Origin: Oculina patagonica
Taxonomy: Eukaryota
Assembly (NCBI RefSeq): GCF_052425735.1
Contig: NC_135764.1
Location: 12,090,001 to 12,154,000 of the forward strand
Reading direction: 5' to 3'
Length of the DNA stretch: 64,000 bases
Each line of letters starts with the position of its first letter. Position 1 is the stretch's first letter. Made by a program: the position numbers and the translations under genes. The notes under the pieces were generated by a model that saw only the letters and a program-made list of their open reading frames with translations, was not told the origin of the DNA and did no database searches. Positions 4,731 through 43,067 of this stretch are shown in pieces.

Positions 4731-4874
4731 CTTTCGGGCTATATTTTTCATGGCTCGGTAAATATCCACCACTTGCCACCTCCACTTTGGTGAATAGTCG
4801 TTAATTATTATTCAGCAAATGCATGCACTACCAATATGTGGTCAAAATATTAACATTATCTGGCATCCATAACA

Positions 4875-8009: not shown

Positions 8010-8180
8010 ATGAATTTTGGAATGTTGGTTTTTTAGGAAGTAGGAAAACTGGAGTACCCGGAAAAAATCATCGGAGCGAGGCGAGGACCACCAACAAACC
8101 TAACCCACATATGGCATCGGGTCGGAATCGAACCCTGGCCACATTGGTAGGAGACGAGCGCTCTAACCACTGCTCCATTT
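8010..8180 (-). mobile_element. Degenerate tRNA-derived SINE (copy at ~40715-40885)
   Basis: Minus strand reads ..agtggttagagcgctcgtc.. and GGTTCGATTCC (B box), followed by a GGTACTCC(A)GTTTTCC core typical of V/Meta-type SINEs. Confidence 0.7.
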
Positions 8181-11051: not shown

Positions 11052-14000
11052 CTGGTGGCATTTAAAGCAGGCCCACTCGTAAGACGTTTTCTCAGTACCA
11101 ATGTCGTTTTCAGCAGCCGCCAGGTCGGCCTCAGCTTGTCGAAACCAGCGTCGTGCCTCTCGTGGTTGGGGATTGGTGGTACAGAAGCTTGGGGGAACTT
11201 CCCATGAACGTGTTCTGGACGTTTGTGAACGTGTACTGTGGCCAGTTGACCCATAGTGTTGAACGACGCTGTCTCGGTACTCTCGGCGCTGTGATTTGTA
11301 CCGCCTTACACGCGCTTCCCAGAAACAATAGAAGACACAATAGGACACCCCGTAGTTCTGCAATGTTTCTCTTTCCAGTCGTTCAATTTCATTCTTTAAG
11401 TGTTGAAACACTTGTGTGCAGAACGCCTCGTTTCCTGGGTTCATGTCGGGATGCCACCGTAGAAACAGTCGCTTGATAATTTGTCTTCCTCTGTCTTCCG
11501 GTAGCTTCCAAGCTTCTTCAAGCATTCTTGTAATTTCCTCGAAAATCTTCTGTTTATCCGTCGTGGAGTGAAGCTCTCTTGCATGTCAGACAGTACAACT
11601 TCACCTGATGTTACCTCTTGAAAGCGGTAAAATTTGTACAGGTCGGTAACATGGACAATTTTCGGTTCCTTGTCGTCTCCAATGTTGATCTTGTAGGACT
11701 TCGCAAAGACACTGACACTGTCATTCGGTACTTCTTCGATTATCACGGCGTAGATGTAGGTGGCATCTCCTTCTTGCAGTTCCAAACTTGGATCGTCTAA
11801 CTCGTATCCAACGTATTCTCCGGGAGTTAACACTTCGAATGCCGGATTTAGAAGGTTATGCATTGCAATAGGGATGAAACTACCCGGCGGCGGGATGACC
11901 TCTCCTTCTTCCGCATCATAGGGGTCGTCTTGCCGAATCTTCATTCTATCCAGTAAGGAACATATCTTGCCAGTTTGGCTGAGGAGCATGGCGGGAATGT
12001 ACATAGTTGCTTCTCGCAGCAGTCCTCGACACACCCCCGCAATCACTTGTGTTAACGTTAAGGCTACCGTAGACATGGTTTCTTCCGCGTCCTGGACTGC
12101 GTTAACATATACTCTCCAAATCTCTCCACCGGACTCTGAAACGTTCTCCAAAAAGTATGGTACTTCGAGTTCACTCCCTCGAATCACGATCCCATTATGA
12201 ACCAGATGAGTGACAATTTTACTCATTCCAAGGAAGTCGATACTTTGTAAACTGCTTCTCACAGTAGCGATCACACTTTCGTCTAGCCCACCACCTTGAT
12301 TGGCGTGACGAATGAGTCTGACAATTCCACGGTAGAATTGTTCCGAGTGCAGCTGCTTCTTCAGTGCGCTAGCAGCACCAAAATCAAAACGCTCGGCATT
12401 GTCTTCAGAATCCGCGAATTTTTCTTCGATTACAGAAGACATCATCTGAGGCCGGACAGCTGTGGGAAGAAGCATGATTAAGTCCTGGAAATTTGCACCG
12501 GATTTGCAGCAGACATCGGCCCTCTTTAGACTCACAACAAAAGGAAGGTTGAAGTCCTGAATACGATCCTTGTACTGCGGAGCGTCATTGAAGATAAGCT
12601 CGGTGGCCTTCCTTAACACGACGGGTTGTACATTGTCATCCGGACTGCTACTGAATGGAGATGTGGCTGGTAGGTACAAGGTAGATATATCCCACGTTGC
12701 GGCGGGAGTGTGTTGCAAGGTTTCGAGAAGACCTTTAACCGCTCTCAAAGCACTGTCAACTTCATTTGGATGCAATTGGTTTGCCTTGCACCGTCCGTGT
12801 AACATGTCTAGGACCATGGCATAGTGTGAAGGTGTGACAGAAGGGGAACAGCCCAGGTATTTAAATAGTGTCGTAAACTCACTGAGCTCGGCAGGCATTC
12901 TGTAAAGAAACGGCTTGATCTCAAGGTTCTCGTTCAATTCAATTACTACCTGTTTAGCATAAGCAAAACGTCTACCTTCCTCGACCAAAAGGCAAGGCGT
13001 ATGCTCAAGTCTGTCCTTTCTGAATGTGTTTGATCTGGCTTTTCCTTGAAGAAACCTGTAGATATTCCTCATCACTGACATCCTCGTGTCTTTCTGAAAA
13101 GGCGTCACATCGATCTCCAAATGACAGGATAAATTTTGGCAGTGAAGAGCAACCAGTTCCACAGTTGGCGTTCTAAAAACCTGAAGTTGGGTGAGAATAG
13201 AATCGCAGTAACCACTTTTATTTATACTTTCTGGAAGTTTCATCAGGTACTGATAATTCTCTGGATGTGCCCAATGTGGAAGGATACCTGCAGTCGTCCA
13301 AACAATCTCAGTGTGTTCTGCTACCACAGAGCGTTTGAATGCAATGTATGGAGTATTGTCATCACGTCCTTCACCAAACTGTGGATAGAGGGCTTGAAGT
13401 TCTTGGTTTACAGGATTAGTGGCAACAAAGCGGATATCAGAAACGGCTTGTAGAAGCTCTTCTTCCAAAACATTTTCTCGAAGAAAAAGGTGCTTCACAA
13501 GTTCTTTAGACTTTTCGTCAGTTTTCTTATTCCGTTGTGTTGCGCCCTCACGTGCAACTTCCGTAGCAAACTTCTTGAAAAGATCTGGGGAAACTTCACA
13601 GATAAGCCCGATTTTTTTCAAAAATGACAGCCATTCGTGTGTCTTCAAAGATTCTGGAGGAAACATCTCTTCAGAAAGCATTATTTTGAAAACCTCATTG
13701 TGGGGATCGTAGTAGGAAGATGCTCTCTTTAAAGTCCCATCATTGGAGGTAACAATCGCTGCGTTTCTCAAACAAGCCAACAGCTTCTGTTTGTCGTCAC
13801 TGTCGTCGGTTGATAGTTTTGCTAAAATAGATGCACGGATGTGTGTTAGATGAGCCAGCCTTGCTTCTGCGCTAAAAGTGCTAAAGTATTCCAAAATGAA
13901 ATTACAATACATGTCGACGGCCGAGACACATTTGAATCCCAGAAATTCGAACAACGGAGATAGTCGTGACAAGCCTTCCAAAAACACTACATGTAGTCGA

Positions 14001-17000
14001 AGTCCCAACTCTTCCATTTCTTTTCGTGGAATGCCAATAGGAAGGGCGCACACTCTTTTACTGTATACACTGACGAGTGCACCATTCGTTGCTTGATAAA
14101 AAGGAAGTCTACTTAGTATGTTCTTGTCCCTTTCTTGCAAACCAGCCACATTGTCACTGAAGTATTGCAAAATGGTCTTGCATTCCAAAGTCCGCAATTG
14201 CCCTACAAGCGCTTGTGGGTTTGTCGTCAACTTCTGCTCCAACGATGTCAGTAAAGATGCTGGATACTTAAGGGTCGCAACTAGCAGGCGTGCAAGGCGA
14301 CAGGAATCCAGCGAGGTGTAAACAAAGGGGCCCGTAGTGGACATCACAACATAGTTAACTTCTGCCAGAGTGAGCTTTTTTAAAGCCTGCACAAGTGGCC
14401 GACTTGAAGCATCATGAATTGACAAATCAAGGACAGATCCTGCTAATCGTAAGGGCACTAGGAAGTGTTCCGTTTTCACACCAGAAGTTTTTCCATTGTG
14501 TGATCTTAGCACACAGGTCGTCTCTGTGGCAGGGAGTATGCTCCAGTTTGAAAGAGGTTCGAGTATTGCTTGAATTCTTCTTTTCTTCTCTTCTTCACAT
14601 ACCTTTTCTTCCTGTAATACATTCTTTGTTTCTTCATTCAGGAAAGCCCAAACGCTATATATCCAAGTACGATTTGGCACTGATACATCTGTTGGACACC
14701 ACTGGACGTACCTTTCTCTGCTGACAAACTCGCGTGGCAACGTTCGATGTAAATTATTTGCAAACTCCTTCACTCCAAAACGCTTAAACACAGGTGACTC
14801 TAGACTCGATGCATCGTCAAAGATTTCCTTCCTAATTTCGTCGTGGACAAACAGCTCTTCGCATTGCGGTAGGATTCCGTAATGACGTGAGAGAAACTTA
14901 GGATAAGCACTGCTAAATTGGTGTAAGGAGTTGTCTTGTGTCATAAGTAATGGTAGGCCAGACAGGTTTGCTAAGAAGTGTTCATCATCCTTGCAGTACT
15001 TAAGCACGAGTATGACCCCGTCAGCGTTTTTAAATGGGGTCTCGCTGACATCAACTGACATTGATCCAATGCAGCAAAGGGGATCTTCATTATTGCAGGT
15101 CTTGTAGAACTCCATTACAGCAGAAGGAGACACGCAAGGAGAATTCACACCGGATTTCTGCAATGCTTCAAATACAGATAAAGAGAATTTTACAAGGTTG
15201 AAACCTGTTTGCAGCAAAATTTCTTCAAATGTTGTTTTCTGTTGAATTCGTCTGTTTTCTCTGTCCATCTCGCTTTCAAGATAACGCTTTGGTTCACGGG
15301 AAAAACAATCACTTTTTCCAAGGTTGTTGAAGAATGCTTTGCTTTTTCCTTCGCCTGTTGGAGGAAGCCACGATAGCTGAACTGTAGCGGAGTTACGTTC
15401 TGATGGGTTGCCACGCACAACTGGAAGGAGTCTCGTTCCCTTGTTGTCCATTCCTTGGTACACAGATTTTACCAAGGTCTCCCAGTAAGATTTGTCTAAG
15501 ACAACCAATGGAAATAACTTCTCGTAGTTTGCGAGCTTTTCCACCAAAGCATCTTTACTGTAGTTAACGGTAACTTGTTCAGTGCTGTGTGTGATTGGCA
15601 AATCAAGGTAACTCCTCACCTCATCCAAAAGTGTTAAATAGCATGAGGCTATTACATCCGTCAGCAAAGCGTTGTTCCAGTCACTACGATAGCCACTAGC
15701 TTCGTCTCTCCGCAGATTTCTTCGGCCTTCATGGTCCAGTGCAAAGTGACCATTGATATGGACCGGAAGGTCTGTTTCTAAAGGAAGAGGAAGAAAGCAG
15801 TAAGCTTTTTTCCTCTTAATCTCAGACTCCCCTTGCTTTGATTTTTTCTCCAAAAGACAAGCAACACCACCTCGAGGAAGCATTCCCAGATCGCCTTTGT
15901 TATAAGAATCCACTATGCTTCTTTGCACTTCATTTTCGAAGCCAGCTTGCTGGACAATCATCCACTTTTCGTTGTTTCCAAGGCTGTCTCGTAAGTTCAA
16001 AACATAGGAACACTTTTTCACTTCGATGTTGTTGGGGAACAAGTCGCTTCTTTGATCATCCGTCTTTCCGATCTGTTTGACGTAGGTGGCAAACTCTTTT
16101 CTTTTGGCTGCGTCCTCCTCTGACATTTCTGCCTCGACAAAATAAGAGTTGACCACTTTTCCACTTTCTTCGTCGATGTCACACAAAGTGATTTTTCTTA
16201 CGTTATTCACAAAAAGTAGAACTTCAAAGAGCTCTCCTTTCAAGGCTTTCATCATGTCATCCAACGCTGCCAGTGTTACTGGTGATTCAGAAATCTTGGA
16301 GTGATCTGCCATCGCTTGGGTTCTCAACGGCAAACGAAACATTGTTGAGTTATGTATGGGGAACGCATCTTCGTTGTAGCAAGAAAAAACATGTGGAAAC
16401 ATGCTTTTCAATCGCGTTGATTCTTTAAACATTCTTCCTGGTTCTGACGCAGTTGCACCGGGCACGTACTTGTGGTGTGGATCCAACACACACAAAACAT
16501 CTCCAATCTCTTCACCACTCGAGACAAATGTTGGAACATCAGTCAAATGATACACCGCATTGAAGCCGACACCATACTGGCCAGTCTTGTTTGGATCATC
16601 TCCCTTACTGCCTTCACCGAGGTTCTGTATTCCCACAATATCAGCTTTAGTGAAGGGTTTGTTGTTGTACACGCACAATGCAGGGCCCTGGAGTGACTTC
16701 CACGAGTCTCCAAACACTTTCTCGTCTGGATGCTGTCGAGGGTCTTTAATAAAAGAAATCTCTGTTGCTTGAGCATCATCTGCATTCTGAAGAAGTTCTT
16801 TCAAGATTTCTTTTTCACATGGGTAAGCTGTTAAAATACGTTTCAAACGATTGGTGAGTTTTTCTTTTTGACCAAAGGGAATACCAGACGAAAAATGCTG
16901 CAATGCTTTTTCACGGCGTGTTTTGACCCCTAGTTGGCCACTCGTTTTATGAGGAATCATGTCATTCACAAAATGAACCCCAATTTCGTCAGGCATCCAC

Positions 17001-20000
17001 GGGCAGTCTCTCATACAAAGCTCACCAACAGATCGCATTATTCCTTGCGAATCAGGAAGATAAAATAATTCCTGATTTTCCTGAAGTTTGGCGACGTCGT
17101 CCTCTGGAACTATCAGACAGTTACCGAGTTGAACTGCCACATTAACTGCGACCTGAAGATTCTTCTCATCGAGCTCTGTGTCACCAAACGTCTCCTTTAT
17201 TTTCTTCAAGCAAGTGATGTAATCTCTCTCTTCAAAAGCATGTTTTACACCGGCTCTTTTCATTAAATCTTCAAATGATCTGGCTAAATCATGTGGGAGC
17301 TGATAAAGATATGGAGAGCAATCAACGTCCAACCTGAAAGCCACTTGTTCTGTATAAACAAATTCTTCCCCAGAGAGAATGAACTTCTTTCCACAAAACA
17401 TCCCTTTCACGTCCCCCATCTCCATTTCTTTGTTTTCAATGGCTTTTTGAAGATATTTGTAAGCTGCCAAGCACACTTTGTTTAGCTGTCGGATTTCATC
17501 TATACCAAGACTGTTAGCAGCGTTTATCGACGAGGCAACATCAAGTTGGGTTCTAACATGGTCTGGAGTGGCCTTCTTTTTGTCTAAATGTAGGAACTTT
17601 TGAACAGCTGTTGGGATAAATTGATCTACCACTGGCTCAGTGCAACAGACCAGGTACTTTTCGCTTTCTAAAAAGGACTCCATAGGTGACAGCAATACTC
17701 TTTGGGTATCGTTTTGTACCTTATCTCCTTTCCAGGGAAGAGGAAACTTCTTTGGTTTCCGAAGCACTGGAAGAAATTTGGCTTGTAAGAATTTGTTATG
17801 GATATCATCGGAAAGAGAGCTTCCATCCTCATTCTTAAGCTTTCTTTCTAGGCGATCCACCAATGCTTGTACGCGCATTAAAGCTGCTTCACTACTACAT
17901 CTGTTTAACATGCTGATACTCTGTGCCCTTTCTGCAAGTTCAGGCCACGGAAGATCATCTGTCAACATCCCAAGTTGTTCAAGTTTGGCAAGTCGCATGC
18001 TGTTCAAGAACGTTTCCTCCGTACCAAAAGGGAACCTTTTATCCTCAGGGCTAAACAGTGACGCCGCGGTTTTGTATGGGTTGATTTGTTGGCCAGGACT
18101 CTTCAGCTCTTGACCGTCTGGGGAGGCTGGAATGCAATCATGTACTTTTATTAGGTCGTCGAATTTTCCAGTTTTGTCGTCTAGGACGTACAATACCAAT
18201 TCATTCCTCAGATGGGATGGTACCGAAGCAACATTTGGAAAGAATAGCTCGCGGAAGAACCTTTCCTTGTCGTAGCATTTAGCCTGGATTGCTGCTCCCA
18301 GATCATATTCTACAAAAGACTGGTACACATCAGCTGGCATATCAATGATGACTCCACTCCCTTTGTTCAACAACTGGAAAACCTCAAACGACATGTCTCC
18401 TACTTGTGACTCGTGCCGAAAGTTTGGCTCCAAAAAGACCATTTGAGAGATGTCCACCCATCGATTTCCATCTGAAAAGAGAGCATAGCCTCCACAGGAA
18501 AGTTGTTGGTAAAACGAGCGAGAAAGAGGCTCACAGTGAAGCTGTACTTCGCAAGCTTTGGGCCACAGTGAATGAAACTGGTATGTGACAGGTGCCGACT
18601 TCTTTACGTCCTCAAGTAGGTCCAGATATGCTGCACAGATAGAGTCTTGCATAAGAATATTGTTCCATTTTACTTCAAAGCAGTCTTTGTCGTCAGCTGT
18701 TTTCTCCTTCAAACCTCGTCTGCTGGCGGCTACTGCAAATGCACCATTTACATGCACTGGAAAACCACTGTAGATTGGAAGCGGGAGGTAGCAGAAGAGG
18801 CTTCCCTTGTGATGTGGCTCTTTCGTTGTGATCTGATCGACAACAGGTACAGGCAGGAGCTTTTCACTTTCGTCAGACAGCAACTGAACAGCAACTCCAG
18901 CTGATGGAAGTAGAGACTTGTCGTCTTTAGCAAATTGCATTGCGTTTCCTTTGCCCATGGAAGATGCGACAAGCCAACTTTCAGATTCATCCTGAAGGTG
19001 ACCATTGTCCTTAAGGAACGATCTTCCGCATTGTGTAATGGTGCTCTTTATGCTGACTGTTAGTGCAGAGCTGAGCAGAACAGTATTAGAGCTGGTGGAA
19101 TCTCCTAGACGCTTAGCTACTTCAGATGATGCTCGTAGAACATTGCACTGTTTTACTAAGTACTGGTCTTCAGTGCTTAGGTTCTTAACAGCTGGTGAAA
19201 GTGTGACTGGAACTGTCAATTCTCTTAAGATTCCACCTTGATGCAATGATTTGCTGACCTCAAACAACAGAATTGGTTGTTGGGAAGAAGCTGATTCTCT
19301 CGGCAAATGAAACACACTTATGCGGCGGACATTTTGTGTGAAGAGTAGCAAGGTTTTAGCACCACGAGTGAAAAGATCCAAAAGTTCCTCCACTTGTTTG
19401 TTGTCGTAATGAAGTTGCTTGATTTCGCTTTTAATAGCTTGCTCTTTAGTTCGTAAAGGAAAGCGAAAGAGTGTTCCATGGTACGAGTTGTCCTCTTTTT
19501 CCAGGCGAAGATCACAATCAAATATGCCGTTGAATGGTTTGAACTGGTTGCTAAAATTTCTCAGTCTCTTCGTGTTCTTGTTGATGTCTATCTTCATTCC
19601 TGGTTTGTTCTTGTTCCTGATTGCTTTTCCCAGATAGAAAGTGTTGGGGTCAAAAATCACAAAGTAATTTGTACTCACGAACATTGGAACATCCGTCAGG
19701 TTGTATACTGCATTGAAGCCGAGACCAAACTTTCCAATTTTCTCAGTGTCGCCTTCTTTTGTTGCACCGTTCAGTTTTGTTATGTTTGCAAAATCCTCGT
19801 CTCGAAACTCTGCATCGTTGTAAACCCACAGTGCAGGACCCTGGCAGTGTCTCATTTCTTCATCAATCAGACAGGTCATGGCATCTTCGTTTGTTCTTTC
19901 ATCGTAAAGAAATCTAATTTCAGTAGCTCCGGCGTCGTCTGCGTTTTGAACAAGCTCTTTCGGTACTGCAAATCCATCGGTGTAATCTTCCAAAAGTCTG

Positions 20001-22191
20001 CTAAGTCTGCGAGTTAGTTTTTCTTCTTGCCCAAATTCCTCTCCTATTTTTTCCTCTCCTATTTCCAGCTCGTCAGGATCCAGCATTCGATTCATAAGCG
20101 TTGGAACAAGCAAAAGTTCAGCTGTGCTGTTTGGAATGTTTGGATGTACGTACAAAAAATCCATTTCTTCATCACGATTGCTTCTTTCCAACCACTCGTG
20201 CTCACAGTACATGCAATCTTCAACTAGTGCAAGCTTGAGTTAAGCATCTCCTTCTACGTGAGTGGGAACCAGAACCTTTTCCTGAAGCGTCGAAGGCAAC
20301 TGTTCACCAACCTTTGGCTTAACCTCATTCAGGATGTCCACAGATAACTGCAGGTCTTTCTTCACTTCTGTAGTCGGAAACTGAGAGCGGCTGTCATACT
20401 TTTGCTTTATCAAATGAAGAACTTGGAGCAGGATTGCGTCATCGCATTTTTCCAGCAAGCCAAGACTGGCAAAAAACGCAGAGAAATGTAGCACCTCTGA
20501 AGGGAGGGCGCAGATGTATGGTGATAGGTCAATAGGAGGCTTCTCAGATAGCAGAACGCTAGGTGAAGAAAATCCATCTCCACTCCAGATCCAGGCTGGA
20601 TTGTCAAGGTCCCGTAAAGCCATCATTACGTCGGCGTGATCTGCACGGCTTAAAAATGCATAGATTTCTTTAACTATCAGGATGTAACGCGGCTTTTCAT
20701 CTGGGTTGTAACAACTGACTACGTTGTTCAGGTGCTGTGTGACATCAAATACAGTTGGCTCTGTGTTCCAGGAAAAATAATGGGCTAACTGACTGGATGG
20801 CTCTGTTTTAACGACTGGCTTTACGGATCCAACGAGATTTACCAGTTGATTGCTCTTGACTTCTGAGGGTTTGTGGAAATTGGACTCTTTGCTTGTTTCT
20901 CCCAAAAACGTAAGACTTTGTGGAAAATCACTGGGTTTTCTTCTTATCCTGGGTACCCATGAGATGTCTTGAAGAAGTAATCCCAGCTTTGTTCCACAAG
21001 CGGTCTCTTGAAGTTTTGAAGGATTTCGTGTCAAGTATTCCACGATTGCTTCTGACTTTATTTCCGCTGCTGAAAGGCTTGAAATGCCACTGACCGCTTT
21101 CGCACTTTGGTAAAGGTCTTGCCCAGTGATCCTTTCCTCGCCTTTCATTCCGAGATCTTCCAAAATCACAAGGGCTGCAGGATCGTTGTATTGCTCTCCA
21201 GCAGGAAAAACATCTTCATCAGTGAAAATTCTCCTCAACGAGTCTCCTCTGGGGTCGAATATTTCAATTGGCCGAACTCGTCTATTTTTGGTTGAGACAA
21301 ATGGCAAAGCTTTTAATTTCTCTTTAAATCTCCCATTGGCACCAGCGTAAACTTTATAGCGCTCCATCACAAAGGCCATAAGTCTGTCAATCTCTTCAAC
21401 AGTATAACAACCCTCTTCTACACCGGGGAATATTTCTTCGAGTAAAAATTCAGGCGGCGTCAGGATCCTGATGTCCAGTAAAACTGCCAAATGCTTCGAG
21501 TCGTCTTCCTTAACGTCAATGAGATCTCGGCGAGGAGTCACTGGGAACGACTGTTCGGGTGCGGCACAAAGATCCTCTTTCTTCGAAACAAAAGCCTTGG
21601 ATAGAGTCTCAAACAAAGGAAGGCAATGGAGAACCTTCTTCTCTTCTGGTTCCAGTGATGAAGCTTTAGCAACAAACTTCCTCAAAGAGCGCTTCCCCTC
21701 GTCTGGTACTTTTTGCATTCCAGCCGTCATCACGGGCAGGGAAGCCGCCAAAGCTCTTAAAACACCTTGAGTTGACGGTGGTTGGACGAACGTACTCGTG
21801 ACAGCGGGATGGAGGCTTATGAAATTTGGATATTCCTGTAATACTGTCACACCGAGCTCTTTCAAAACGCCAGTGAGGGTGTCATCAAGGCAATCGCCAT
21901 GAAGGCTTCTTACTACTATTTTAGATGGCTGAGTGAGTCTTGCCAAGGTTACCGAGGCTTGGGACATGTCGATTGGAAGCAGTGGAAGGTTCTCAAGCAT
22001 TTTAAGCTCATTTTCTGTGGCAAAGTTCTTGCCAAGGTAGTCCCACACGAGCCCCAGCCAGTCCTTTGGAGGATGATTTTCGACTCCAGGATACCACAGA
22101 ACGTTTTCTCCCACTGACCACTCAGGAGGCAGTGATTTTGAAAGAAGTGTACCTACGTTGTCTTTGCAGAGATGTCGTAGCTGCGTGCATC
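11052..22191 (-). pseudogene. SACS: Giant exon of disrupted copy
   Basis: Split into ORFs 20240-22342, 11441-20212 and 10980-11525, which together reproduce the 3787-aa ORF of the other copy. Confidence 0.85.
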
Positions 22192-25100
22192 CTATGTAAA
22201 ATGAACAAAACTGTTTTGGATTATTTCTCTTAACAAAATTTATGTAATGGCCTTTTTGAGTCAGGAAGACTTTACAGATACTCTCTGTCCTTCGAGATGC
22301 TTTGCCATGGAAAAAAAACATATCATCTGTAGTAACATGCATTCAAGAACAATAAATTTCCGAAGTGTACTACTAAATAGCTAAGCTACTGCGAAGATAG
22401 CCGTACTTTTAAGATCTCCATGATACAACATACTACTATAGCTTGGCGGTGCAGAGTTTTGCTGCAAATACAGGACGTCGTATTCCTACCAACAACAAGT
22501 TTTGTTAAATTCGATCTTCTACTCTAGATCTGAAAGTGAATGTTTATTCAATTCAAACCTCTGTATTAATTATATAATTATATGGAATTAATTTTGGTTG
22601 CTTCGTAATAAAGTCTAGAACATGCTTCGTACCTTGGTCAGCAGCTGCTTGCAGGCTTCTTAAGAGGTTCTCGTCAATGCTCTGCTCCAGAAATCGATCC
22701 TGTAGACACGGAAGAAGTTCACGCGGGTGCTCAGGCGAACTGATGTAAATAGCTTCACCAGAGTTGGAAAACGAAGTGAACAATCCATTGGAAACGGGCA
22801 ATAGCTCTAATCCTAGGAGTTCTGAAAACTTGCCGTCTTTGAGGACAAATTTTAGAAGCAGCAACTTCTCTGAGTGACTGATGCTTCTGTAACACGAAGG
22901 CGTTTCCTTGAGTACTTTCCGTGCTAGTAGGGGCGTGATTTCTGTACTCAAGTTTGTGTACATGCCCAACGCTTTTAACACGTGGCCGGGCAAAGAGGCA
23001 ACATTTTGATCAGCCTTGAGGAAAACTCGCTCAAGCAGCTCTTTAGGATCATCCTCTTGGACTCTGTTAAAGATCACATCTTCCACGTTTAGCCAGTTTC
23101 CTCCGAGGGCTGGAGTGTAAACAACGTTTTCGGTACACAGCAGCTCAAACAAGGGGTTCTGCAGTCTTTTCCACTTTTGGTCAATACTGTTGATGTCTGG
23201 CCACGCTCTAATTGACAAAGAACATTACAGTAAAGTAATCAGTAAAAACAAACCTTTCACGGTCAACGAGGCAATCTGAGAATTAATTAACATGCATATA
23301 TATTCTTCTTGTTTGCCTCTGTATCTTTAAGGACCTCTTCTGTGGGCGTCCAATTCTGTTATACTCGACAGTCCGGTAAACTGTTCGCGAAATTAACCTC
23401 ATGAAAAGGACGGTATTTGTTTGGAAAATCTTCAGGACATACAGATCAACAGACATGAAAATTTAGACATTTTAATCTTACTTGTAAATTGCCTCTGCTT
23501 GTACACTATAACACTTCTCGTTAATGGCTTCCCTCAGCATCGTGGCATACGCGCGGGGGATTGCTTCTTCTAGCAGACACTGGTTCCACAACAAGGACTT
23601 GTCAGTCAGCTGTCGGCCTTCCTTCTCAGCCAGATCTTCTTGCTCAGCATTCGGTGTCTTAATGTAACGTCTGTTCTGGTTCAAAGCAAAGAAGCCGTTA
23701 ACATGCACTGGCAAACCTGTCAAGCTCGTCTTTTGCACCGGCAATGGTAAGAAACAAAATACGTGTCCTTGAATGTCAGGCGTTTGATTTCCGGGACTAT
23801 CTGGTAATGCCATGGCGACACCAACTAAGGGTAGGTAGCTCAGGTCTCCATCTGTAGCCAGGCTTTCAAATTGCGACGAGACCTTTCCACCACAAAAATA
23901 AATTGTGACAAGAAATGAATGGCGTTGGGTGCCACTCTCTTTCCCTTCTGAGAAACCTAGTGTCTCAATCGTGATTGGATACGTTACTTTAACAGGTTGT
24001 GGCATTATTTTATCTATTTGGCCTGTCGTGATCTCGCTGTGAAACTCTTGCCTCTTTTCTCGAACCAACTGAAGGCTATCATCGCTGATTCGTACTTGAA
24101 ACGTTTTCCTGGCTTCAGTGTCTGACTCTTCCCGGACGTAAAGCTCTATGGATTCCAGATGTTGTAGAAAAAGGAGAATCAAGTGCGCATCAGACATGAA
24201 ACTCTCAAACAGCGTGTGCACCTTTTCTGCAGAGTACAGCGTCTGTGACAGCTTGGATGGGGTGGTTCGCAGGGGGAAGCGAAACAACGTGCCATTGTAA
24301 GATCCTTCAGAGAAAACATCATCTGTACAGTCGAATATTCCTTTGTAAGGGAGAAACTGGTCCGGTATACTGTCCATGGCTGCACGATCTTCTATCATTC
24401 GCCATCTGTGTCCCGTTCTTCTTTCTCTTCCGTCGCCAAAGTACTCCTCGTGCGGATCAATCACGCCAATTTGTGAACTGCTCACGATGCTTGGGAGATC
24501 TGAGATCAACAGAGCATGAAATGAGCACAATTGTAATTTTGGCGGTAAAAGAACGGTTCTTGGCAGTTCTGAGACGTTTCGGCCACATTTCGCGCAGTCG
24601 TATTGGATGAGACGTTATTTAAAATAATGGAAACAAGATTTGAAACAATTTTCCCGTAGCAATCGGAAATATAGACTCACCTGTAACATGAAATACAGAC
24701 TTAAAGCCAAGGCCAAAACGGCCGACTTTCATCGGGTCTTTGACTTTAATACTGTCGCACAACATCCGTATGCCTTTCCAGTCGTCTTTAGTAAACTGAG
24801 CGTCGTTGTAGGCATAAAGTGCTGGGCCCTGTTTGACAAGCGTACAAACATTTTTTTTTTATAAAAAATACACAACAGAGCATTAATTCAAGCATTTGTT
24901 GTGTTATTAGTAGTGCAACGAAGTACCAACAGGATTCAAATACTGTGTAGAAAACTCCGAGTGTTTTGCCACTCACTTCGTTTAAAAAACGTACCTGAAA
25001 CTGGGCGAGGCCTTCGCTATGTAGTTTCTCTGTTCCATAGCTGTGTTTGTCGTGAAGTAATTTCACTTTGCTTGCCCCTGCATCTTCGGCATTTTGAATG

Positions 25101-25589
25101 AGCTCCTAATATATGGGAGAAATATTGTTCACATTTGGAAGAAATAAAATCATAACAGAAATATAGAGTAACGATAGACTAGTATCAATGAAAGGACTTT
25201 TTAGTTAGGTGAGAATTTGTCTTTGACACAATCGCCATCCGGACATTCAACTTTGAGTTCTTCTTGGTTTTATAGATATGATAAGCATAAAGTATGTTCT
25301 GCTGAAGACTGTGGTGCACAATATAGCTGTCTTTTGTCAAGGTCTTTACCTTGACTATCTGTCCGTCATCTGGATACTGATCTAGTATGGTCCTCAGCTG
25401 TTGGATAAGCGATGGCTGAATCAAATCAAACCCATCGTCATCATTATCCACTAGCACGAAAAAACAAAACAAAAAAATATCAGACTATTTGCGCCAATTT
25501 CAGTACCTATTCAATAGCTGGAGCCTATCGCTTCTGACAATGACTGATCCGAAAAAACTTACATGAAAAGACTGGTGGAAGCAAGCAAG

Positions 25590-25637
25590 AATGAACGAAG
25601 GAAAGAAAAAAGAAAGAACGAACGAACGAACGAACGA

Positions 25638-25668
<31 letters not shown>

Positions 25669-27404
25669 CAAAAAAGGGAATGGAAGGAAAGGAAACAGGT
25701 AAGTAGGGAGGAAAATATCCAGGCAGTAGCTAGGTAGGTAGGTAGTGGGTAGGTAGGTTAGTAGGGAGGTATAGGAAAGTAAATATACAGGCAAGCAGGT
25801 AGGCAGGTGTAAAGTAGGCTCGGCAGACAGGCATGCAGGGACATAGGTTTTAAGGTAGGTAGAACTTAGGTAGGTAGGTAGGTAGGTAGGTAGGTATGAA
25901 GGCAGGTAGGCAAAAGAAAGGCATGTAAGCAGGTAGGTAGGTAAGTGTGTAAAGGCACACAGGCAATCTGGCAGGCTGGCAGGGCAGGCAGGCAGGCAGG
26001 CAGGTAGCTGGGTAGGTTGGTAGGTAGTCAGTCAGTTAATTAGTTAGTTAGGTAGGCAGGTAGGTAGGTATGGAGGAAGGTAGGAAAGGCAGAAAGGCGA
26101 CAGGTTGGTAGGTGGGTAGGTAGATAGGTAGGTAGGTAGGTAGCTAAGAAGGCAGGCAAGCAGGCAGGCAGGTAGGTAAGTAGGAAGGTAGGTAGGAAGG
26201 TAGGTAGGTAAGTTGGCAGGTAGGTAGGAAGGTTGGCAGTTACGTAGGTAGGTTAGTAGGTAGGTAGGTAGCTAAGAAGGCAGGCAAGCAGGCAGGCAGG
26301 TAGGTAAGTAGGTAGGTAGGTAGGAAGGTAGGTAGGTAAGTTGGCAGGTAGGTAGGCAGGTTGGCAGGTACGTAGGTAGGTTAGTAGGTAGGTAGGTAGG
26401 TAGGTAGGTAGCTAAGAAGGTAGGCAAGCATGCAGGTAGGTAAGTAAGTTGGCAGGTAGGTAAGTAAGAAGGCAGGCAGGTAGGTAGGCAAGCAGGTTGG
26501 TGGNNNNNNNNNNNNNNNNNNNNNNNNNNNNNNNNNNNNNNNNNNNNNNNNNNNNNNNNNNNNNNNNNNNNNNNNNNNNNNNNNNNNNNNNNNNNNNNNN
26601 NNNNNNNNNNNNNNNNNNNNNNNNNNNNNNNNNNNNNNNNNNNNNNNNNNNNNNNNNNNNNNNNNNNNNNNNNNNNNNNNNNNNNNNNNNNNNNNNNNNN
26701 NNNNNTGGGTAGGTAGGTAAGTAAGGAGGTAAGAAAGTAAATATACAGGCAAGCAGGTAGGCAGGTGTAAAGTGGGCTTGGCAGACAGGCATACATACAT
26801 ACATACATACATACTTTATTTAACGTGGAAAAAGTACACACTTAGCTGTTAGCTAGTTTACAGGTGCTCCACGATTAAAAGTTTAGTATTTACAAAAGTA
26901 TTTACATCAAAACAAAGGGTATAAAAGTATTACATCAGACTATTTTAAAATGATTAAAAAAAAAAAAAAAAAAAAAAAACAACAACACCATCTAGCTAAA
27001 TTAAGATTCCTAAAAATATATATATATAAATATAAAAATCCTATCTAAAAGCGATAAAATATAATTATTAAACATTGAAATCAGTTTGTCTAATCTTTTT
27101 CAAAAAGTCCTTTGAGCCTGCCATGGAACGAATATCACGAGGTAGCATGTTCCAGTGCTTTGCTGCAGCATAACGCCACGACTTAAGACCATATCTGGTA
27201 GTGTTCACTTAGGGACGTAGGTTTTAAGGTAGGTAGAACTTAGGTAGGTAGGTAGATAGGTAGGCAGGTAGGTTGGTTGGTTGGTAGGTAGTAAGGTAGG
27301 TATAATAGGTAGACAGGTAGGTAGGTATGAAGGCAGGTAGGCAAAAGAAAGGCATGTAAGCAGGTAATCAGGTAGGTGGGTAGGTAGGTAAGTGTGTAAA
27401 GGCA

Positions 27405-27442
<38 letters not shown>

Positions 27443-28360
27443 TAGGCAGGCAGGCAGGCAGGTAGGTAGGTAGTCAGTCAGTTAATTAGTTAGGTAGGTA
27501 GGCAGGTAGGTAGGAATGGAGGAAGGTAGGAAAGGCAGAAAGGCGACAGGTTGGTAGGTAGGTAGGTAGGTAGGTAGGTAGGTAGGTAAGTTGGCAAGTA
27601 GGTAGGCAGGTTGGCAGGTATGTAGGTAGGTAGGTAGGTAAGTGCTAAGAAGGCAGGCAAGCTGGCAGGTAGGTAAGTAAGTAGTAAGGTAGGTAGGCAA
27701 GTAAGCAGGCAGGTTGGTGGGCAGGTAGGTAGATAGGTTGGNNNNNNNNNNNNNNNNNNNNNNNNNNNNNNNNNNNNNNNNNNNNNNNNNNNNNNNNNNN
27801 NNNNNNNNNNNNNNNNNNNNNNNNNNNNNNNNNNNNNNNNNNNNNNNNNNNNNNNNNNNNNNNNNNNNNNNNNNNNNNNNNNNNNNNNNNNNNNNNNNNN
27901 NNNNNNNNNNNNNNNNNNNNNNNNNNNNNNNNNNNNNNNNNNNNNNNNNNNNNNNNNNNNNNNNNNNNNNNNNNNNNNNNNNNNNNNGCAGGTAGGCAGG
28001 CAGGTAGGTAGGTAGGCCGGTAGGTAGAAAGGCAGGTAGGTAAGTAGGCAGGCAGGCAGGCAGGCAAGTAGGTAGGTANNNNNNNNNNNNNNNNNNNNNN
28101 NNNNNNNNNNNNNNNNNNNNNNNNNNNNNNNNNNNNNNNNNNNNNNNNNNNNNNNNNNNNNNNNNNNNNNNNNNNNNNNNNNNNNNNNNNNNNNNNNNNN
28201 NNNNNNNNNNNNNNNNNNNNNNNNNNNNNNNNNNNNNNNNNNNNNNNNNNNNNNNNNNNNNNNNNNNNNNNNNNNNNNNNNNNNNNNNNGGAAGGAAGGT
28301 AGACATGCACTGCACTCAGGCAGGCTGACAGGCTGGCAGGCAAGGGTGGGCAGGTGGCCT
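25590..28360. repeat. Compound (AGGT/AGGC/GAAA)n microsatellite tract in intron 1, with assembly gaps
   Basis: Direct reading. N runs at 26504-26705, 27742-27987 and 28079-28289. Confidence 0.95.
26791..27210 (-). mobile_element. 5'-truncated CR1/L2-type LINE fragment
   Basis: Minus strand 27068-27208 translates VNTTRYGLKSWRYAAAKHWNMLPRDIRSMAGSKDFLKKIRQTDFNV*, typical of an ORF2 C-terminus. It is followed by a 3'UTR, AATAAA and a (GTAT)n tail. The uninterrupted homologous site is seen at ~25826-25850. Confidence 0.8.
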
Positions 28361-29189
28361 TTCTACTACCTTTATAGGTAAGTTGAACAATACGTTTATT
28401 GAGTCATTGTATTTCCACTCAAGGTTCCAATAAAAGACTTTTGCTCTGCCAATTTGAAGTTTAGAGTTTTTAATTAACAAAAGTAAATAGAATTACCTAA
28501 AATACCGTGACCCTTTAGTTGGTTAGTACACATACACCCTTCTCTCCCCCCCCCCCCCCCCACTTCCAGTCTGTCATCTCCAAGTAAAGAGTACGTTGGT
28601 TTTTTATGCCAGTGCTAGCTCACTAAAAATCTGATTGAATTAGCATTCGTCTGCTTGACTGTCTGAATTTTTTTTATTTTGTTTTGTGACAAGTTTGGGA
28701 TTAAAATAACGGCATCACAAAGAGATGTACGATTAAATAAAGTTGACTTGCAGAAAAAGGGAATATACAAGATATTCATTTGATACTCACTCATTTTCTG
28801 GAAGGATCACTCTTCTGCTATCACATACAGATCATCTGGAAGAGAACGGTGGTACCGAATATTTATTTCACTACAAACCAGAACAGCATTTCGCAAATTT
28901 GCGAAACACTGTGGCTAAATTACAGCCAGCCAGTTAAGTTTCTCATAAAACGCCAAATTAAATGACTAGAATTTTTGAGAAATTCGAAGAAACTATGCCA
29001 TCTTCATAAGATGAACTATGTGATTTTGAAGGGCTCTAGCTATAGATCTCAAATCGGCTTGTTTAATCATTTCAAAAGAATTGAGAGCAAACTGTTTGCA
29101 TGCAGGCTAACCGGAGCGTTTAAACCGAAGTACAGGCTAAAGGGACGTTTGGAACTTGGGATTTTCTGACTGCCGATCACTTTATGGTC

Positions 29190-29197
29190 TATATATA
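29190..29197 (-). promoter_or_regulatory. Putative TATA box ~400 bp upstream of the ATG exon
   Basis: TATATATA in a block conserved between the diverged 5' regions (also 62629-62636), next to a CRE-like cgtcacgt. Confidence 0.35.
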
Positions 29198-29261
29198 GTC
29201 TATTTAAAACCTCGATGAGCCGTCACGTTGCCGGTACGTCCTAGAAACACTTCGTAAAAAG

Positions 29262-30619: not shown

Positions 30620-31142
30620 CGTAAAAAGTAATAAGAAAGGCCGTGAAAAGCAGAAAATATGTTAAAACAGAAAAGTTTCGGGTTACAGCTTTGAGTAAGG
30701 AATTCAACTATGTAAATATATGCAAGGCATCAATTCTCATCCTTTACTAGCTGGAGAGTCTGTCGGTGTATCTTTTGCTGTAACATTCTGTGAAATGGCG
30801 TCTCTCAATAAAACCTTTTGTACCGAACGGAATTTAGGAGACCAGAATAAGCGATCGAGGAACGCAACTTATAATTTGTTTAAAAATATGATTTTTTTAG
30901 CCGTTAATTGTCTAGCAAAAGTTCAGCTGTTGCATCTCAAGAGCTTCTCGAAGCCTTGGAGGGCCTAACGCTTTCGAAAATCTAAAACTTTGAAGTGTTC
31001 ACGACACTTCAAGTTTCGTCCTTGTAACAGGATGGAATTTAGGAGAGCAGAATAAGCGATCGAGACCGCAAGTTATTTGTTCAAAAATGTGATTTTTAGC
31101 CATTGATTGTTGTGCAAAACTTTAGCTGTTGCACATCAAAAG

Positions 31143-31157
31143 CTTCTGGAATCTTCG
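31143..31157. promoter_or_regulatory. Candidate heat-shock element (nTTCnnGAAnnTTCn)
   Basis: cTTCtgGAAtcTTCg. The paralog at 63214-63228 is cTTCtgGAAgcTTCg. Further perfect HSEs (aGAAttTTCgaGAAt) at 343-357 and 32267-32281. Confidence 0.45.
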
Positions 31158-31469
31158 GAAGGCCCAACGCTTTCGAAAATCGAAAATTTGTGTGTTCACG
31201 ACAGCTTTTTGGTGCAAAACAGTATCGCAATGAGAGCTTGTGTTTACATAAGAGTGGAACCTTAACTCAGTCTACACCTTCGAGATAATTTTCGCGAGTT
31301 TGATTCCTCTTAAGAAACAACCGTGGCAGTGTGCGTAAGTGCGTTCCGTCTATCTTTCACTTCATTAGCATTGTTTCTCGTTTACCTTACTGTACTTTCC
31401 ATGAAATCCATCCTTTCTTCATTAGTAAAACTACTAAAACTGAATCAAATCCAAGACGCTGGAAGCCTT

Positions 31470-31560
31470 TTCCGAGAAATCCCGTCCTAAACTCGTTGTC
31501 ACGTGATCTATTAACGTTTCCCGGAAAGCAATCATTTTATTCCGTGTCACGACGGTCACG
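31470..31560. promoter_or_regulatory. Candidate STAT/GAS - E-box - GAS cluster
   Basis: TTCCGAGAA 31470-31478, CACGTG 31500-31505, TTCCCGGAA 31518-31526. Same arrangement at 986-1041, 32910-32965 and 63541-63597. Confidence 0.45.
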
Positions 31561-31755
31561 CAAGAGTCACGCCACTAAGCAACCAGCCTCAACAATACTA
31601 CACGAAGCGAAAATGATAGAGGGTCTGTAGAAATTAAACCATTTTAATTGTATAAATAAAACGTAAAACATCTGATGTTTTCACTGGCAATATTCGCAGA
31701 CAATAGTGTTTGTATGACAGTTAACTACAGTTGAGCATGCTGGTCGATGATACCC

Positions 31756-32120
31756 TTAATGCCAAGTAAAACAAAAACAAATGTTTTTCGTCCGGGTTTC
31801 CATTAGAAAGAGAGCGGGCGGGTGCTTTTTTTGTTATTTGTTATTTCCTTCATCGTCAAATTCTTCGGAAGCGAACTTGCAAAATAAATCCTGACCTCTC
31901 CAGTACGGACCTATCGTTTTAAAATTTTGACCTGAGTTCGTGTTAAAACGCAGACAAAAGCCATGTCTTACAGACTTTTCTTTCTACTTAATTGGGGTGT
32001 AATGCCTGTTGGATTTTGTTCTTTCCCACTTCTCCAATAACAAATATTAAAAATAGAGAAGGGCCCCAAAAAATTAAGCGGATGGGGACGAGAAACATTT
32101 TTTTTTTGTATTTGGCCTAA
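31756..32120. mobile_element. MITE with imperfect ~35-bp TIRs (right half repeated at 1-196)
   Basis: ttaatgccaagtaaaacaaaaacaaatgtttttcgtcc vs reverse complement of ggacgagaaacatttttttttttgtatttggcctaa. Confidence 0.6.
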
Positions 32121-35100
32121 TCGATCACCATGTGAACGGGATTCAACTATGTATATACAAAGGCATAAATTCTCATCCTATACTAGCTTAGCCAGTGTCT
32201 ATCTTTTGCTGTAACATTCTGTGAAATGGCGTCTGCCGCTTATGACTTTTAATTTTGTAACAGGACAGAATTTTCGAGAATAAGCGATCGAGAACGCTTC
32301 TTATATTTCTTCAAAAATATGTTTTTAAGCCGTTAATTGTTGTGCAAAAGTTCGGCTGTTGCATCTCAAAAGCTTCTCGAAGCTTTGGAGGGCCTAACGC
32401 TTTCGAAAACCTACAAATTTGAAGTGTTCACGACACTTCAAATTTCGTCCTTGTACCAGGTTGGAATTTAGGAGAGCAGAATATTAAGCGATCGGACCGC
32501 AACTTATTTGTTTAAAAATATGATTTTTTAGCCATTGTTTGTTGTGCCAAACTTTAGCAGTTTCATCTCTTCGGAGGCTTCGGACGGCCTAACGCTTTCG
32601 AAAATCGAAAGTCGCGTGTTCACGACAGCTTTTTGGTGTAAAACAGTATTGCAATGAGAGCTTGTGTTTACAGAAGAGTGCAACCTTAACTTCTACACCT
32701 TCGAGATAATTTTCACGAGTTTGATCTTTCTTACATAAAAACAATTGTGACAGTGTGCGTTAGTGCGTACCGTCTAATTCACTTCATTAAATTGTTACTC
32801 AATTACCTTACTGTATTTTCCATGAAATTCATCCTTTCTTCATCAGTAAAACTACTTAAACTGAACGAAATCCAAGCTGAAAATGATTTCTCAGTACTCC
32901 GGAAGCCTTTTCCTAGAAATCCTGTCTTCTCGCGTTGTCACGTGATCTAAAAGCGTTTCCCGGAAAGCAATCATTTTACTTCCGTGTCACGACTGGTCAC
33001 GCCACTGGGAAACCAGCCTCAACAATACTTCACGAAGGGCAAAGCGAACGAGGATTTGTACGAAACCATTTAAATTGCATAAATAAAACGTGATCCATAA
33101 TTATTGCATAAATAAAACGTGATCCATTATTATTATGTTTTCACTGGCAATATTCACAGATAAGAGTGTTTGTATGACAGTCGAGTATGTTACAATAATC
33201 GATCACCATGTAGTCAAATTTCTACACACGTTTGTCATGACCAAAAATGATGATATCAGTACCTCATAGACCACTGGTCTACAACATTTTTCTTCCGATC
33301 CAAGACTTCCATATCTGCTCGCGGTGGTCTGCACGCAAGACAAAAATGCGAAAATTGAGACACTTGTCACGCTTGTTATTGAGCCGAGTTTGTATAGCGG
33401 AAGAAAGCGCTTTATTTCTAGGAATTCTTTTGCAATTTCTGAGAAAACGACTAGCTTGAAAAACAAAACAATCATCATAACAATGATAATGTAACTCTTA
33501 TTCGGCGGAAATTAACATATGGATACAAGAAATAGAAATACCGTATTTTTTTTATTAAACGCCGGCTTCGTTTAACGCCGGGTCAAAATTGCTAATTTTT
33601 AAATAAACGCTGGAGCGTTTATTCGAGGTCCCGGCGTTTATTTGAGGTCAAGCTAACAAGGAAATATATTCTCTTAAATGGCACTGTTATGTTATACTAC
33701 ACTGCAGTACGGTATGCTGCTTTGGAAATTTTAATAAACCTTCAAAGGAAAAGTCCAGCGTAACACAGCTAGGATGGACGCTGTAAAACAAAAATAAAAC
33801 TTAGCAGTGTTTGCCCTCCTGTCTTCATGACTGACGTATTTGAGAACTAATCTCACAGTCGTTGAAATCGCGAGGACCCCTCCAGCGTTGTTTACAGGTT
33901 GGAGGAGGTCCTTTTAAAACGAGGAGGACGACATTGCCGTTAATGAACTTAAACTTTCTACCCATAACCTTTACTTGCACGCTCCTTTATTGTTCATATA
34001 CCGTTTGATTGCAACATTAACGTGTTCAATTCGCAATAATGTAACTTTGGGTAATTATCATTTTTTGGGATCACTCATCGTTTCTGGGAATCGTATGGCT
34101 TTAGACTCGATAGAAAACCACTAAACACGACATGTGTCCAAAAATTAACCCCCCCCCGGGGGGGAGGGGGGTACTCGAAAAAGTTTTGTACGGGGAGGCT
34201 CCGCCCGGAGATCCAACCCCTTAGCCTTTTATTTACCATTTTGATAGAAAAGGTACCCCTTTTGTATACCTTTTATTGCAAAAAGGTACCCCTTTCATAT
34301 ACCTACACGACATCACACTTACCTAAAACGGGAAGTTTTCTTGTCATTTGTATGTAGCGTTTAATAAATTAAGACGATACAGCCAAAAGTTGCGTCTGCT
34401 CGAAATATTTATTGTAAAGGCCTTTTAAATACCATTATGGCAGATTTCCCTACCCTTTCATATACCTAAATTCGTGAAATCCCTACCCTTTTATATACCC
34501 GGAGCCTGAAAAAGGTACCCCTTTCGGGCGGAGCCTCCCCGTATAGGCCATTATAGGGAGTACCCCCCCCCCCCTTCCCGGGAAATAAACGAGTCTCATT
34601 GTTTTGGAAAAACGTGTCTCGTTTTTGAAACGAGACACGTTTCAAAAACGAGACACGAAACGAACACAGCACGAACGAGTCTCGTTTACAAAACGAGTCA
34701 CAAACTACTGATTTCTTTTTATAGACGGGAGAGGGGAGGGGAGGGGGGGTTATAGGGGTGAAGAAAATATTCCTTATTCCAAAAATTTGGGGAAGGCAGT
34801 TGGGACAAATGAATTTCAGAGCACCCTCCTCCCGTATTTCTTACAGCGCTTCCCGCCTTTTTCTCCCGCATTCCGTTCCCATTACCGTCCGTAGTAGCCT
34901 GAGTATCAGGCTTTTCTAAAGGGGAAGTGAGAAAGAGTAGAAGCGCGAAAGGATCTTCCCTTCCCTACCCTCCCCCTCCTTTCCTTAGGAAGGCCTGATA
35001 CTCAGGTTACTTCCGTAGGGATTCCTTCCCCTTTTCTCATATCTATTTTACCTGCCCTTCCCCTATACCTAGTATTTTGCTTTTTTCATTTAATTGGCTT

Positions 35101-35717
35101 TGGATGGAAAGTATAGTAGCAGTTGTTCTTGCACTTATACGCGCGCTTGGTCGCGCAGAAGAATTGGTCATTAGATCATCATTTCAAAAATCTCAATTTT
35201 TAATCCTTTAATAAATAACAATAGTAGCTTGTATCAGGCTAATGATATTTTATCTATTAACAATTTTCGTTATTTAGTGGAATAATTTCAAAGCTTAACA
35301 ATGATGTGGCATCTAATAGGGTGTATTTATTTCACATTTTCAGTAGAACCAATCCAATGCAAGAGCAACAACGAAATGTGTACTATTTTTTGAAGATCAG
35401 TAATGTAATTATCAGATTATTACAATCGCATAAGCAATACTACCTTGCTTATATCATATTGTTTTAAAGTTGAACCTAATTCTTCTCACTTAAATTGTTT
35501 TTAAGGTCTCACGTAAAGATTAGTAAAGTTCTCGTGCCAAATTAGACCCTATTTTAATTCGATTGTATGATGAGTTCAGCTTATGATCACTGTGAACTTA
35601 GGAGTAACAAAACATAACAGGTTCTCCACAAAAAAACAAAAAGTTTGAAAAGGCTGATATGGTATGTCAGGACCTTTTTTATGCAGCTTAGATTTAATTT
35701 AGTCAGTTTTATTAATA

Positions 35718-43055: not shown

Positions 43056-43067
43056 ATTTCCAGTAAT

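Follow-up and report, generated by a model that had tools for sequence, protein, structure and literature searches.

Hybrid genes that arise by unequal crossover in tandem arrays are known from haemoglobin Lepore (delta-beta globin), from red/green opsin hybrids and from CYP21A2/CYP21A1P chimeras. Sacsin-like genes, for their part, come up repeatedly as candidates in studies of heat stress and immunity in corals. In the coral Acropora, sacsin forms the most extreme diversity peak in the genome and falls into two deep haplogroups, which have been ascribed to long-term balancing selection (bioRxiv 10.1101/867754; PMC8626496). Here we analysed a stretch of 64,000 nucleotides from Oculina patagonica (C7:12.09-12.154 Mb, or C7:12090001-12154000; hereafter the window, position 1 being its first letter), which contains two tandem sacsin-like genes, A and B; genome searches covered the 529-Mb assembly. 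Four such genes lie in tandem on C7 in the order Y, Z, A, B, all on the minus strand: A and B are inside the window, Z is found at -31.3 to -5.1 kb relative to it and Y at -61.4 to -41.6 kb. The comparison of these copies robustly suggests that A is a mosaic of three lineages brought together by non-allelic exchange. It combines a B-type 3' body, an orphan island in exon 5 and a Z-type 5' end, and we consider, with somewhat better than even confidence, that non-allelic recombination is the best explanation of this arrangement, unequal crossover being the favoured form.

The window is a collinear tandem duplication with about 32 kb per unit (self-BLAST), and each unit consists of a 10-kb spacer and a minus-strand gene. 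Unit A (1-31924) comprises a non-coding spacer, gene A and the region upstream of it, with no open reading frame (ORF) longer than 142 aa in the spacer (1-10190). Copy B was taken as 31925-64000; the tandem unit B spans 31925-63860 and carries an intact gene B whose giant ORF (43842-55205) encodes 3787 aa. By self-BLAST, the units are 99.6% identical over 1-3254, 97.5-98.7% over 5237-10195 and 99.07% overall over 10191-24640. High identity runs on past the unit boundary: 1-3254 corresponds to 31925-35177, the end of unit A (31411-31924) shares 99.5-100% identity with the 513 bp that directly precede the window, which are the end of unit Z, and the block from -513 to 3254 matches 31411-35177 at 99.5% or more. 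The longer block from -513 to 23271 recurs as 31411-56134, so that the repeat unit extends from the interior of one gene to the interior of the next. Unequal crossover is favoured because the repeat occurs twice, beginning within Z and finishing within A, then beginning within A and finishing within B, and takes in the 10-kb spacer and a boundary at least 99.5% identical.

To compare the two genes we aligned 10191-25700 (A) with 43053-59450 (B) using MAFFT and located changes in divergence by maximum chi-square with 200 permutations. Differences number 0-3 per 500 bp up to 23,000, then 11, 31 and 46. The main breakpoint lies at 23,738 (56,597 in B), with 34 differing sites out of 13,543 on the left (0.25%) and 94 out of 897 on the right (10.5%), a chi-square of 1002 against a permutation maximum of 17.9. 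A second step was located at 23,363 (25/13,168 sites, 0.19%, versus 9/375, 2.4%; chi-square 71), the first difference of the 2.4% stretch being at 23,272. Divergence between A and B is accordingly 0.19% over 10.2-23.36 kb, 2.4% over 23,363-23,737 and 10.5% over 23,738-24,637. The original prediction, made from the letters of the window, had proposed one sharp switch of identity at about 23250-23750 (56110-56610 in B); the switch is there, as sharp as proposed and in that place, but it is made in two steps, with neighbouring tract edges at 23,272 and 23,738. Its amino-acid counts (about 10 differences in the giant exon, 1 in exon 6 and about 30 in exon 5) were also about right, since we found 10 replacements, 1 replacement and 35 differing alignment columns including a codon indel, and its exon numbering agrees with the splice joints seen in RNA contigs. 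Constraint fails to explain the switch, because A and B are some 100 times further apart in synonymous divergence (dS) in exon 5, at 0.22 (nonsynonymous divergence, dN, 0.041; dN/dS, omega, 0.18), than in the giant exon, at 0.0021 (5/2335 synonymous sites; dN 0.0012; 21 substitutions and 1 indel in all). No A-B difference was found in intron 6.

Adding Z and Y in a four-way alignment revealed three tree shapes within 4 kb: A groups with B up to 23.27 kb; B groups with Z, leaving A by itself, over 23.74-24.68 kb; and A groups with Z, leaving B by itself, from 24.9 kb on through exon 1. Overall support for the maximum-likelihood (ML) trees was 98-100. In block I (10191-23271), A and B are near-identical (0.19% over 10191-23362) and Z differs by 2-26% per kb. 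Within it, between 21450 and 23250, 89 sites are unique to Z, none to B and one to A, and all quartet-informative sites (with Y) place A with B (39:0:0); the trees return (A,B) with a support of 100 for the giant exon and ((A,B),Z) with 100 for exon 6, where Z stands at a dS of 0.07. In block II (23272-23737), spanning most of intron 5 together with the 3' end of exon 5, the copies A, B and Z differ from one another by about 2.4% in each pair; sites shared by A and Z, by B and Z and by A and B interleave, and the ML tree is unresolved. Block III (23738-24680) is the orphan island, made up of most of exon 5 and a short intron 4: here A differs by 10.5% from both B and Z, which are 2.5% apart from each other. 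Unique sites over 23700-24750 number 87 for A, 11 for Z and 13 for B, quartets are 32:3:3 for B with Z, and (B,Z) is supported at 100/99. Finally, in block V (24900-29260), which contains exons 1 to 3 and intron 1, A resembles Z (95-99% identity wherever the two can be aligned) and B stands apart, with 85 unique sites for B, 21 for Z and 9 for A over 24750-25700 and quartets of 15:2:0 for A with Z. A and Z are 97-99% identical in 24.75-25.5 kb, 95-99% around exon 1 (B only 66-93%) and 100% over the last 315 bp of unit A; 29.3-30.6 kb could not be aligned in any pair of copies.

The counterpart of blocks II and III in B (56135-57590) is 96-100% identical to Z (-8300 to -6845). This level of Z-B identity extends over about 54800-57590 of B; on the 3' side (left) it is 88-92%, and on the 5' side (right) the intron is unalignable, the middle 600-700 bp of intron 4 having no alignment between Z and B. 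The Z-B block thus has the features of a gene-conversion tract, namely a short stretch of high identity, lower identity on both flanks and an unchanged copy number. Two other ideas were considered and discarded. Conversion of A by Y is ruled out, A and Y being only 88-91% identical in block III. Copy A also has a 914-bp deletion in intron 4 (junction at 24637-24638; B 57494-58410) with ATT microhomology, which it has in common with locus L023 described below; this deletion is ruled out as the recombination joint, since A-unique sites continue to about 24680 on its right.

These blocks bear out the core of the original prediction, that A unites a 3' body and a 5' part from two different paralog lineages: the body is B-type and the 5' exons are nearest to Z. 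The prediction had gone further, expecting the sequence left of the window to match 23.5-31.9 kb almost perfectly, and in any case to be closer to it than unit B is. The near-perfect match did not materialize in exon 5, where Z is only 90% identical to A and 97.5% identical to B. Upstream of exon 5 the match exists and is loose, with 93.8% over 24.64-25.77 kb, 94.8% over 28.4-29.3 kb and 94-97% over 30.97-31.41 kb; only the last 0.5 kb reaches 99.5-100%. The weaker expectation, likewise, does not hold in exon 5 and does hold from 24.9 kb upstream through exon 1.

We then considered the age of the island. In exon 5, dS is 0.055 between Z and B, as against 0.22 between A and B, and about 0.4 from Y to any copy. 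When the A-unique sites are polarised, 32 are ancestral (A identical to Y) and 43 are derived; given this split and the omega of 0.18, both branches are long and the divergence built up under purifying selection. The exon 5 of A is thus an old, constrained lineage. A donor was sought in the Oculina genome and none was found, the best matches being Z and B (90%) and Y (86%), with all others at or below 69%. A protein search with exon 5 of A retrieved P0121 (identity with A 96.4%, with Z 93.7%, with B 92.4%), which lies on a 6,270-bp contig (L023) of a second coral assembly (GCA_044670265.1). L023 is 96.9% identical to A over 23378-24819, unbroken across the intron-4 deletion, versus 91% to Z and B, and it reaches 99-100% over 23998-24720. 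Its exon 6, by comparison, is only 87% identical to A and B, and the start of its giant exon 92.5%. Exon 5 of L023 is at a dS of 0.089 from that of A, and its exon 6 at 0.34; the value of 0.18 for the giant exon was measured on B as a proxy, since A has an internal stop. In block III, ML groups (A,L023) and (B,Z), each at 100/99; elsewhere L023 stands apart. The body of L023 has nothing above 92% identity in the Oculina genome, and a search of other assemblies with the exon 6 ORF for an exon 6 of the A/B type returned only that of L023 itself (88%). As an A-type exon 5 with a short intron 4 sits on a different body in L023, this contig independently marks the present B-identical body of A as a replacement. 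The intron 6 of L023 is about 1.5 kb long and contains repeat copies: two insertions are present, at L023:2690-3560 and L023:2384-2678 (plus-strand coordinates), both belonging to families with many copies in the Oculina genome (74-80% and 86-93% identity), the shorter being about 295 bp with inverted ends.

How could such a copy have been assembled? The array offers direct tandem paralogs, a duplicated unit that leads from one gene interior to the next, and a middle copy that is like its right neighbour on the 3' side and like its left neighbour on the 5' side, as expected of non-allelic homologous recombination (NAHR). It does not show a single junction between two parental lineages, since block III matches neither neighbour. 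We propose that NAHR, most likely an unequal crossover, occurred in the conserved stretch from exon 6 to the 3' end of exon 5, in which Z and B resemble each other most. This crossover would have linked a spacer and a 3' body of B type with the 5' part of the copy on the left, producing a new 32-kb unit. A tract of about 2-3 kb may then have been exchanged between Z and B (97.5% identity), ending where the introns become unalignable; this would have made their exons 5 alike and left A as the sole copy in this genome with the older exon-5 lineage. Later, A and B would have been re-homogenised over the 13-kb body (0.19%, versus 1.3-2.5% in the spacer), with a right edge at about 23.27 kb. Alternatively, part of the level of about 2% may be allelic variation brought in by exchange between homologues. 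The additional Z-B exchange and the later A-B re-homogenisation are needed because one crossover is insufficient, the exon 5 of Z being a near-twin of that of B. The data themselves establish the three conflicting tree shapes, the age and constraint of the exon 5 of A and its occurrence on another body in L023; we infer both the order of these events and, for each of them, whether it was a crossover or a conversion.

Several observations weigh against this scenario. Z, the expected parent of the 5' part of A, has a B-type exon 5, so that an extra Z-B exchange must be assumed. Divergence ranges from 0% to 2.5% between unit copies and from 1% to 6% between A and Z, which calls for several events or for allelic variation. 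The body of L023 is about as far from Z (dS 0.19) as from B (dS 0.18), and for this reason Z is not shown to be the original owner of the A-type exon 5. L023 is moreover a short-read contig, which could itself be chimeric. Lastly, the linkage of the A-type exon 5 to the B-type body, as well as the copy number, rests on the assembly, the reads being in the form of contigs.

The occurrence of the A-type exon 5 and short intron 4 in L023, on an exon 6 and a body of its own (dS 0.34 and 0.18), also suggests a different history. A could be an old member of the array, of the same alpha lineage as L023, whose spacer, giant exon and exon 6 were overwritten from B by long-tract conversion or break-induced replication; a separate exchange would have made its 5' end Z-like, and only the island of exon 5 and intron 4 would have survived. 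That the island unique to A is bounded on both sides, and that the Oculina genome has no match to the L023 body beyond 92%, accords with this account. On the other hand, the copied segment would measure at least 24 kb including the 10-kb spacer, far beyond usual conversion tracts, and the identity of at least 99.5% across the unit boundary, like the Z-like 5' side, follows from a crossover without extra assumptions. We hold this history, the main alternative, to be possible but rather doubtful.

The five N runs of the window bear on yet another explanation, that A and B are two haplotypes of a single locus assembled in tandem and joined in the (TAGG)n of intron 1, the difference in exon 5 then representing a deep allelic haplogroup. 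The divergence of 0.1-2.5% in spacer and body is within the range that we would expect for coral alleles, a microsatellite with N runs is a possible place for such a joint, and deep sacsin haplogroups are known in Acropora (PMC8626496; bioRxiv 10.1101/867754). However, the N runs, all within (TAGG)n arrays, are irregular in length and one pair encloses only 91 bases, so that they look like masks rather than scaffold gaps. In addition, A is Z-like on both sides of them (24.9-25.8 and 28.4-29.3 kb), a pattern that a single crossover accounts for, unlike allelism. An allelic origin of the two units consequently appears improbable to us.

We analysed the support for copy A in sequencing reads, using Logan contigs from four runs, which come from four studies and bear three organism labels. 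Contigs at least 95% like A over the core of exon 5 are present in all four runs, and the two RNA-like runs also display the GT..AG joints of the gene. One RNA contig over 23655-23847 has no difference to A across 12 sites that separate A from B. At 24320, the letter of A and that of B and Z are both present in both DNA runs. A DNA contig of one run (X2) has six B/Z-type letters at 24387-24423 (37 bp) followed by A-type letters at 24424-24708, over the deletion junction; this patch is only suggestive of a short polymorphic conversion and might also reflect a switch of the de Bruijn contig in the 68-bp shared stretch that follows. Two of the private letters of A in block II are absent from the contigs, which show the B/Z letter at 23533 in all four runs and at 23403 in X2.

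The assembled copy A contains an in-frame TAA at 20240-20242 (minus strand), where B has TAT and where Z and all contigs have a sense codon, and a 1-bp deletion at 11571-11572 (minus strand) relative to B (G at 44434), Z and Y, which shifts the frame ahead of a weak DnaJ match and the HEPN domain. Neither the TAA nor the deletion is located in a homopolymer. All contigs of the four runs read A, not T, at 20240; the TAA is thus an assembly error or a private variant, though contigs can drop rare variants. Omega between the giant exons of A and B is 0.56, a value derived from only 15 changes. Derived states number 9 in A and 11 in B, so that copy A is not visibly decaying. If the excess of differences in exon 5 had come from recent fast divergence of A, as a relaxed pseudogene or under positive selection and with no exchange, a stop and a frameshift such as those of the assembled copy would fit with it. 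We rejected this possibility as wholly implausible: exon 5 has an omega of 0.18 and a dS of 0.22 versus a giant-exon dS of 0.002 in the same copy, some 40% of the sites unique to A still have the letter of the outgroup Y, intron 4 has diverged too, L023 carries the states of A, and no contig supports the stop.

The gene has eight exons. GT..AG splice joints in contigs of the two RNA-like runs fix exons 2 to 6 of A, with joints at 22190/22632 (between exons 7 and 6) and 23207/23482 (between exons 6 and 5). In gene A, on the minus strand throughout, the last exon (10420-10698; 43282-43560 in B; located by tblastn with P0002) encodes the C-terminal part of HEPN. It is preceded by the giant exon 7 (11049-22190, with an approximate 3' border), which is near-identical to that of B, and by exon 6 (22632-23207). 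Exon 5 (23482-24499) encodes about 200 residues in addition to the C-terminal half of the first SACS (Hsp90-like ATPase) domain, and exons 4, 3 and 2 lie at 24681-24827, 24994-25104 and 25349-25450. At 25449/25450 the RNA contigs have loose ends whose letters are found at 28792-28817 and 61904-61929, which places the end of exon 1 at 28791. The ATG closes this exon, the start codon lying within its last four bases (28788-28791 in A, 61900-61903 in B). Intron 1 (25451-28790, from the RNA-contig loose ends and TRF) measures 3.3 kb and contains three N runs and (TAGG)n arrays, at 25867-26488 and 27241-27738.

The gene is sacsin-like, as established by its SACS repeats and HEPN domain. The giant ORF of B matches the SACS family PF25794 in 2 stretches (E 1.1e-159); exon 5, of A and of B alike, corresponds to positions 112-245 of this profile, and exons 2-4 to its N-terminal part. 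In B, HEPN profile positions 1-34 (Pfam) are found at the end of the giant exon and positions 33-115 in the last exon. A DnaJ match (PF00226) occurs at the expected place before HEPN and is weak (E 0.037; 14.6 bits, below the cut-off of 27.8). For a vertebrate-type ubiquitin-like domain there is no room, as translation starts only where exon 1 ends and the protein enters the ATPase repeat directly, although no Pfam scan for it was made on the short N-terminus. This domain is not a defining feature among cnidarian sacsin-like genes (PMC8626496). If copy A is intact, its protein would consist of the B body with a variant C-terminal half of the first Hsp90-like ATPase repeat, under a Z-type promoter and with a Z-type 5' end.

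Matches to the SACS domain are found at roughly ten places across the Oculina genome, and no more copies of the array exist to the right of the window (50 kb examined). Y (P0002), on the contig of the window, is annotated as Oculina patagonica sacsin-like, with a protein of 4966 aa. Its N-terminal 510 residues, in two exons (-43400 to -41613), have no tblastn match in Z, A or B, which begin directly at the first ATPase repeat. Copy Z contains a tandem triplication of units of about 4.7 kb at C7:12070690-12080146 (-19310 to -9854; loci L016-L017), each unit consisting of the 3' part of intron 6 and the first ~1340 codons of the giant exon; all three are open-framed (3721, 1462 and 1499 aa), and the ML tree pairs the second with the third (99/99). 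A module of about 0.9-1.1 kb is present at both ends of each unit (212-1078, 30620-31707, 32136-33002, 62771-63633 and 63954-64934, the last extending beyond the window) with 82-93% identity, and two copies abut at unit boundaries; unit B is followed by another module copy and a degenerate spacer start. About 1.4 kb of the unit B spacer (36616-37988) is lacking in unit A, between 4871 and 5237, and smaller spacer indels are seen at 3254-3481 and 4206-4654.

Compared with vertebrate sacsin (SACS, the ARSACS protein), the Oculina genes have the same three SACS (Hsp90-like ATPase) repeats, giant exon and C-terminal HEPN; they differ in the N-terminus of A and B, without room for a ubiquitin-like domain, in the sub-threshold DnaJ match and in the number of loci, roughly ten. 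With sacsin of Acropora they share the family and the setting of a stony coral, and in both cases a sharply bounded old block, diverged by several per cent and with many replacements, is found in an otherwise similar gene. In Acropora, however, the variants are alleles of a gene reported to be single-copy and to have three exons, their block falls between the Hsp90-like and J domains, and a paralog was argued against from read depth, whereas here we have tandem paralogs of an eight-exon gene and a block in exon 5. A process such as that proposed for the Oculina array can, on our analysis, give a block similar to that of Acropora. It is conceivable, if unlikely, that exchange between tandem sacsin paralogs could generate the sharply bounded, seemingly ancient haplogroups of coral sacsin, the forms found in A and L023 (alpha exon 5 on a B-type body in A, and on a body of its own, 7.5-13% diverged, in L023) being alternative forms of one locus in Oculina or its closest relatives. 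If this were so, A and L023 forms mapped to a collapsed reference would mimic the signal of balancing selection described in Acropora. In any case, array members that swap kilobase blocks place a 10%-diverged exon beside 13 kb of near-identity, which calls for caution in short-read population scans and expression counts at sacsin-like loci.

The closest parallels in mechanism are the hybrid genes of tandem arrays. As in these, the paralogs are direct and in tandem, copy A in the middle resembles the neighbour on the right in its 3' part and the one on the left in its 5' part, the intergenic spacer belongs to the duplicated unit, and the junction lies where the paralogs are most alike. Unlike them, the sacsin array presents three tree shapes instead of two, because the island in exon 5 fits neither of the neighbours; the two halves of the unit are of unequal age, and no phenotype is known. 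The Z-B tract of about 2-3 kb at 97.5%, with flanks diverged by 10-25% and one end where the introns become unalignable, resembles short-tract conversion in concerted evolution, as does the 37-bp B/Z-type patch that one contig hints at inside A in another individual. The A-B tract, of 13 kb or of 24 kb with the spacer, is long in comparison with classical conversion. Taken together, the mechanism is a textbook one, and the locus is an ordinary but clean case of concerted evolution, which shows how the first ATPase repeat and the promoter can be shuffled onto a common body.

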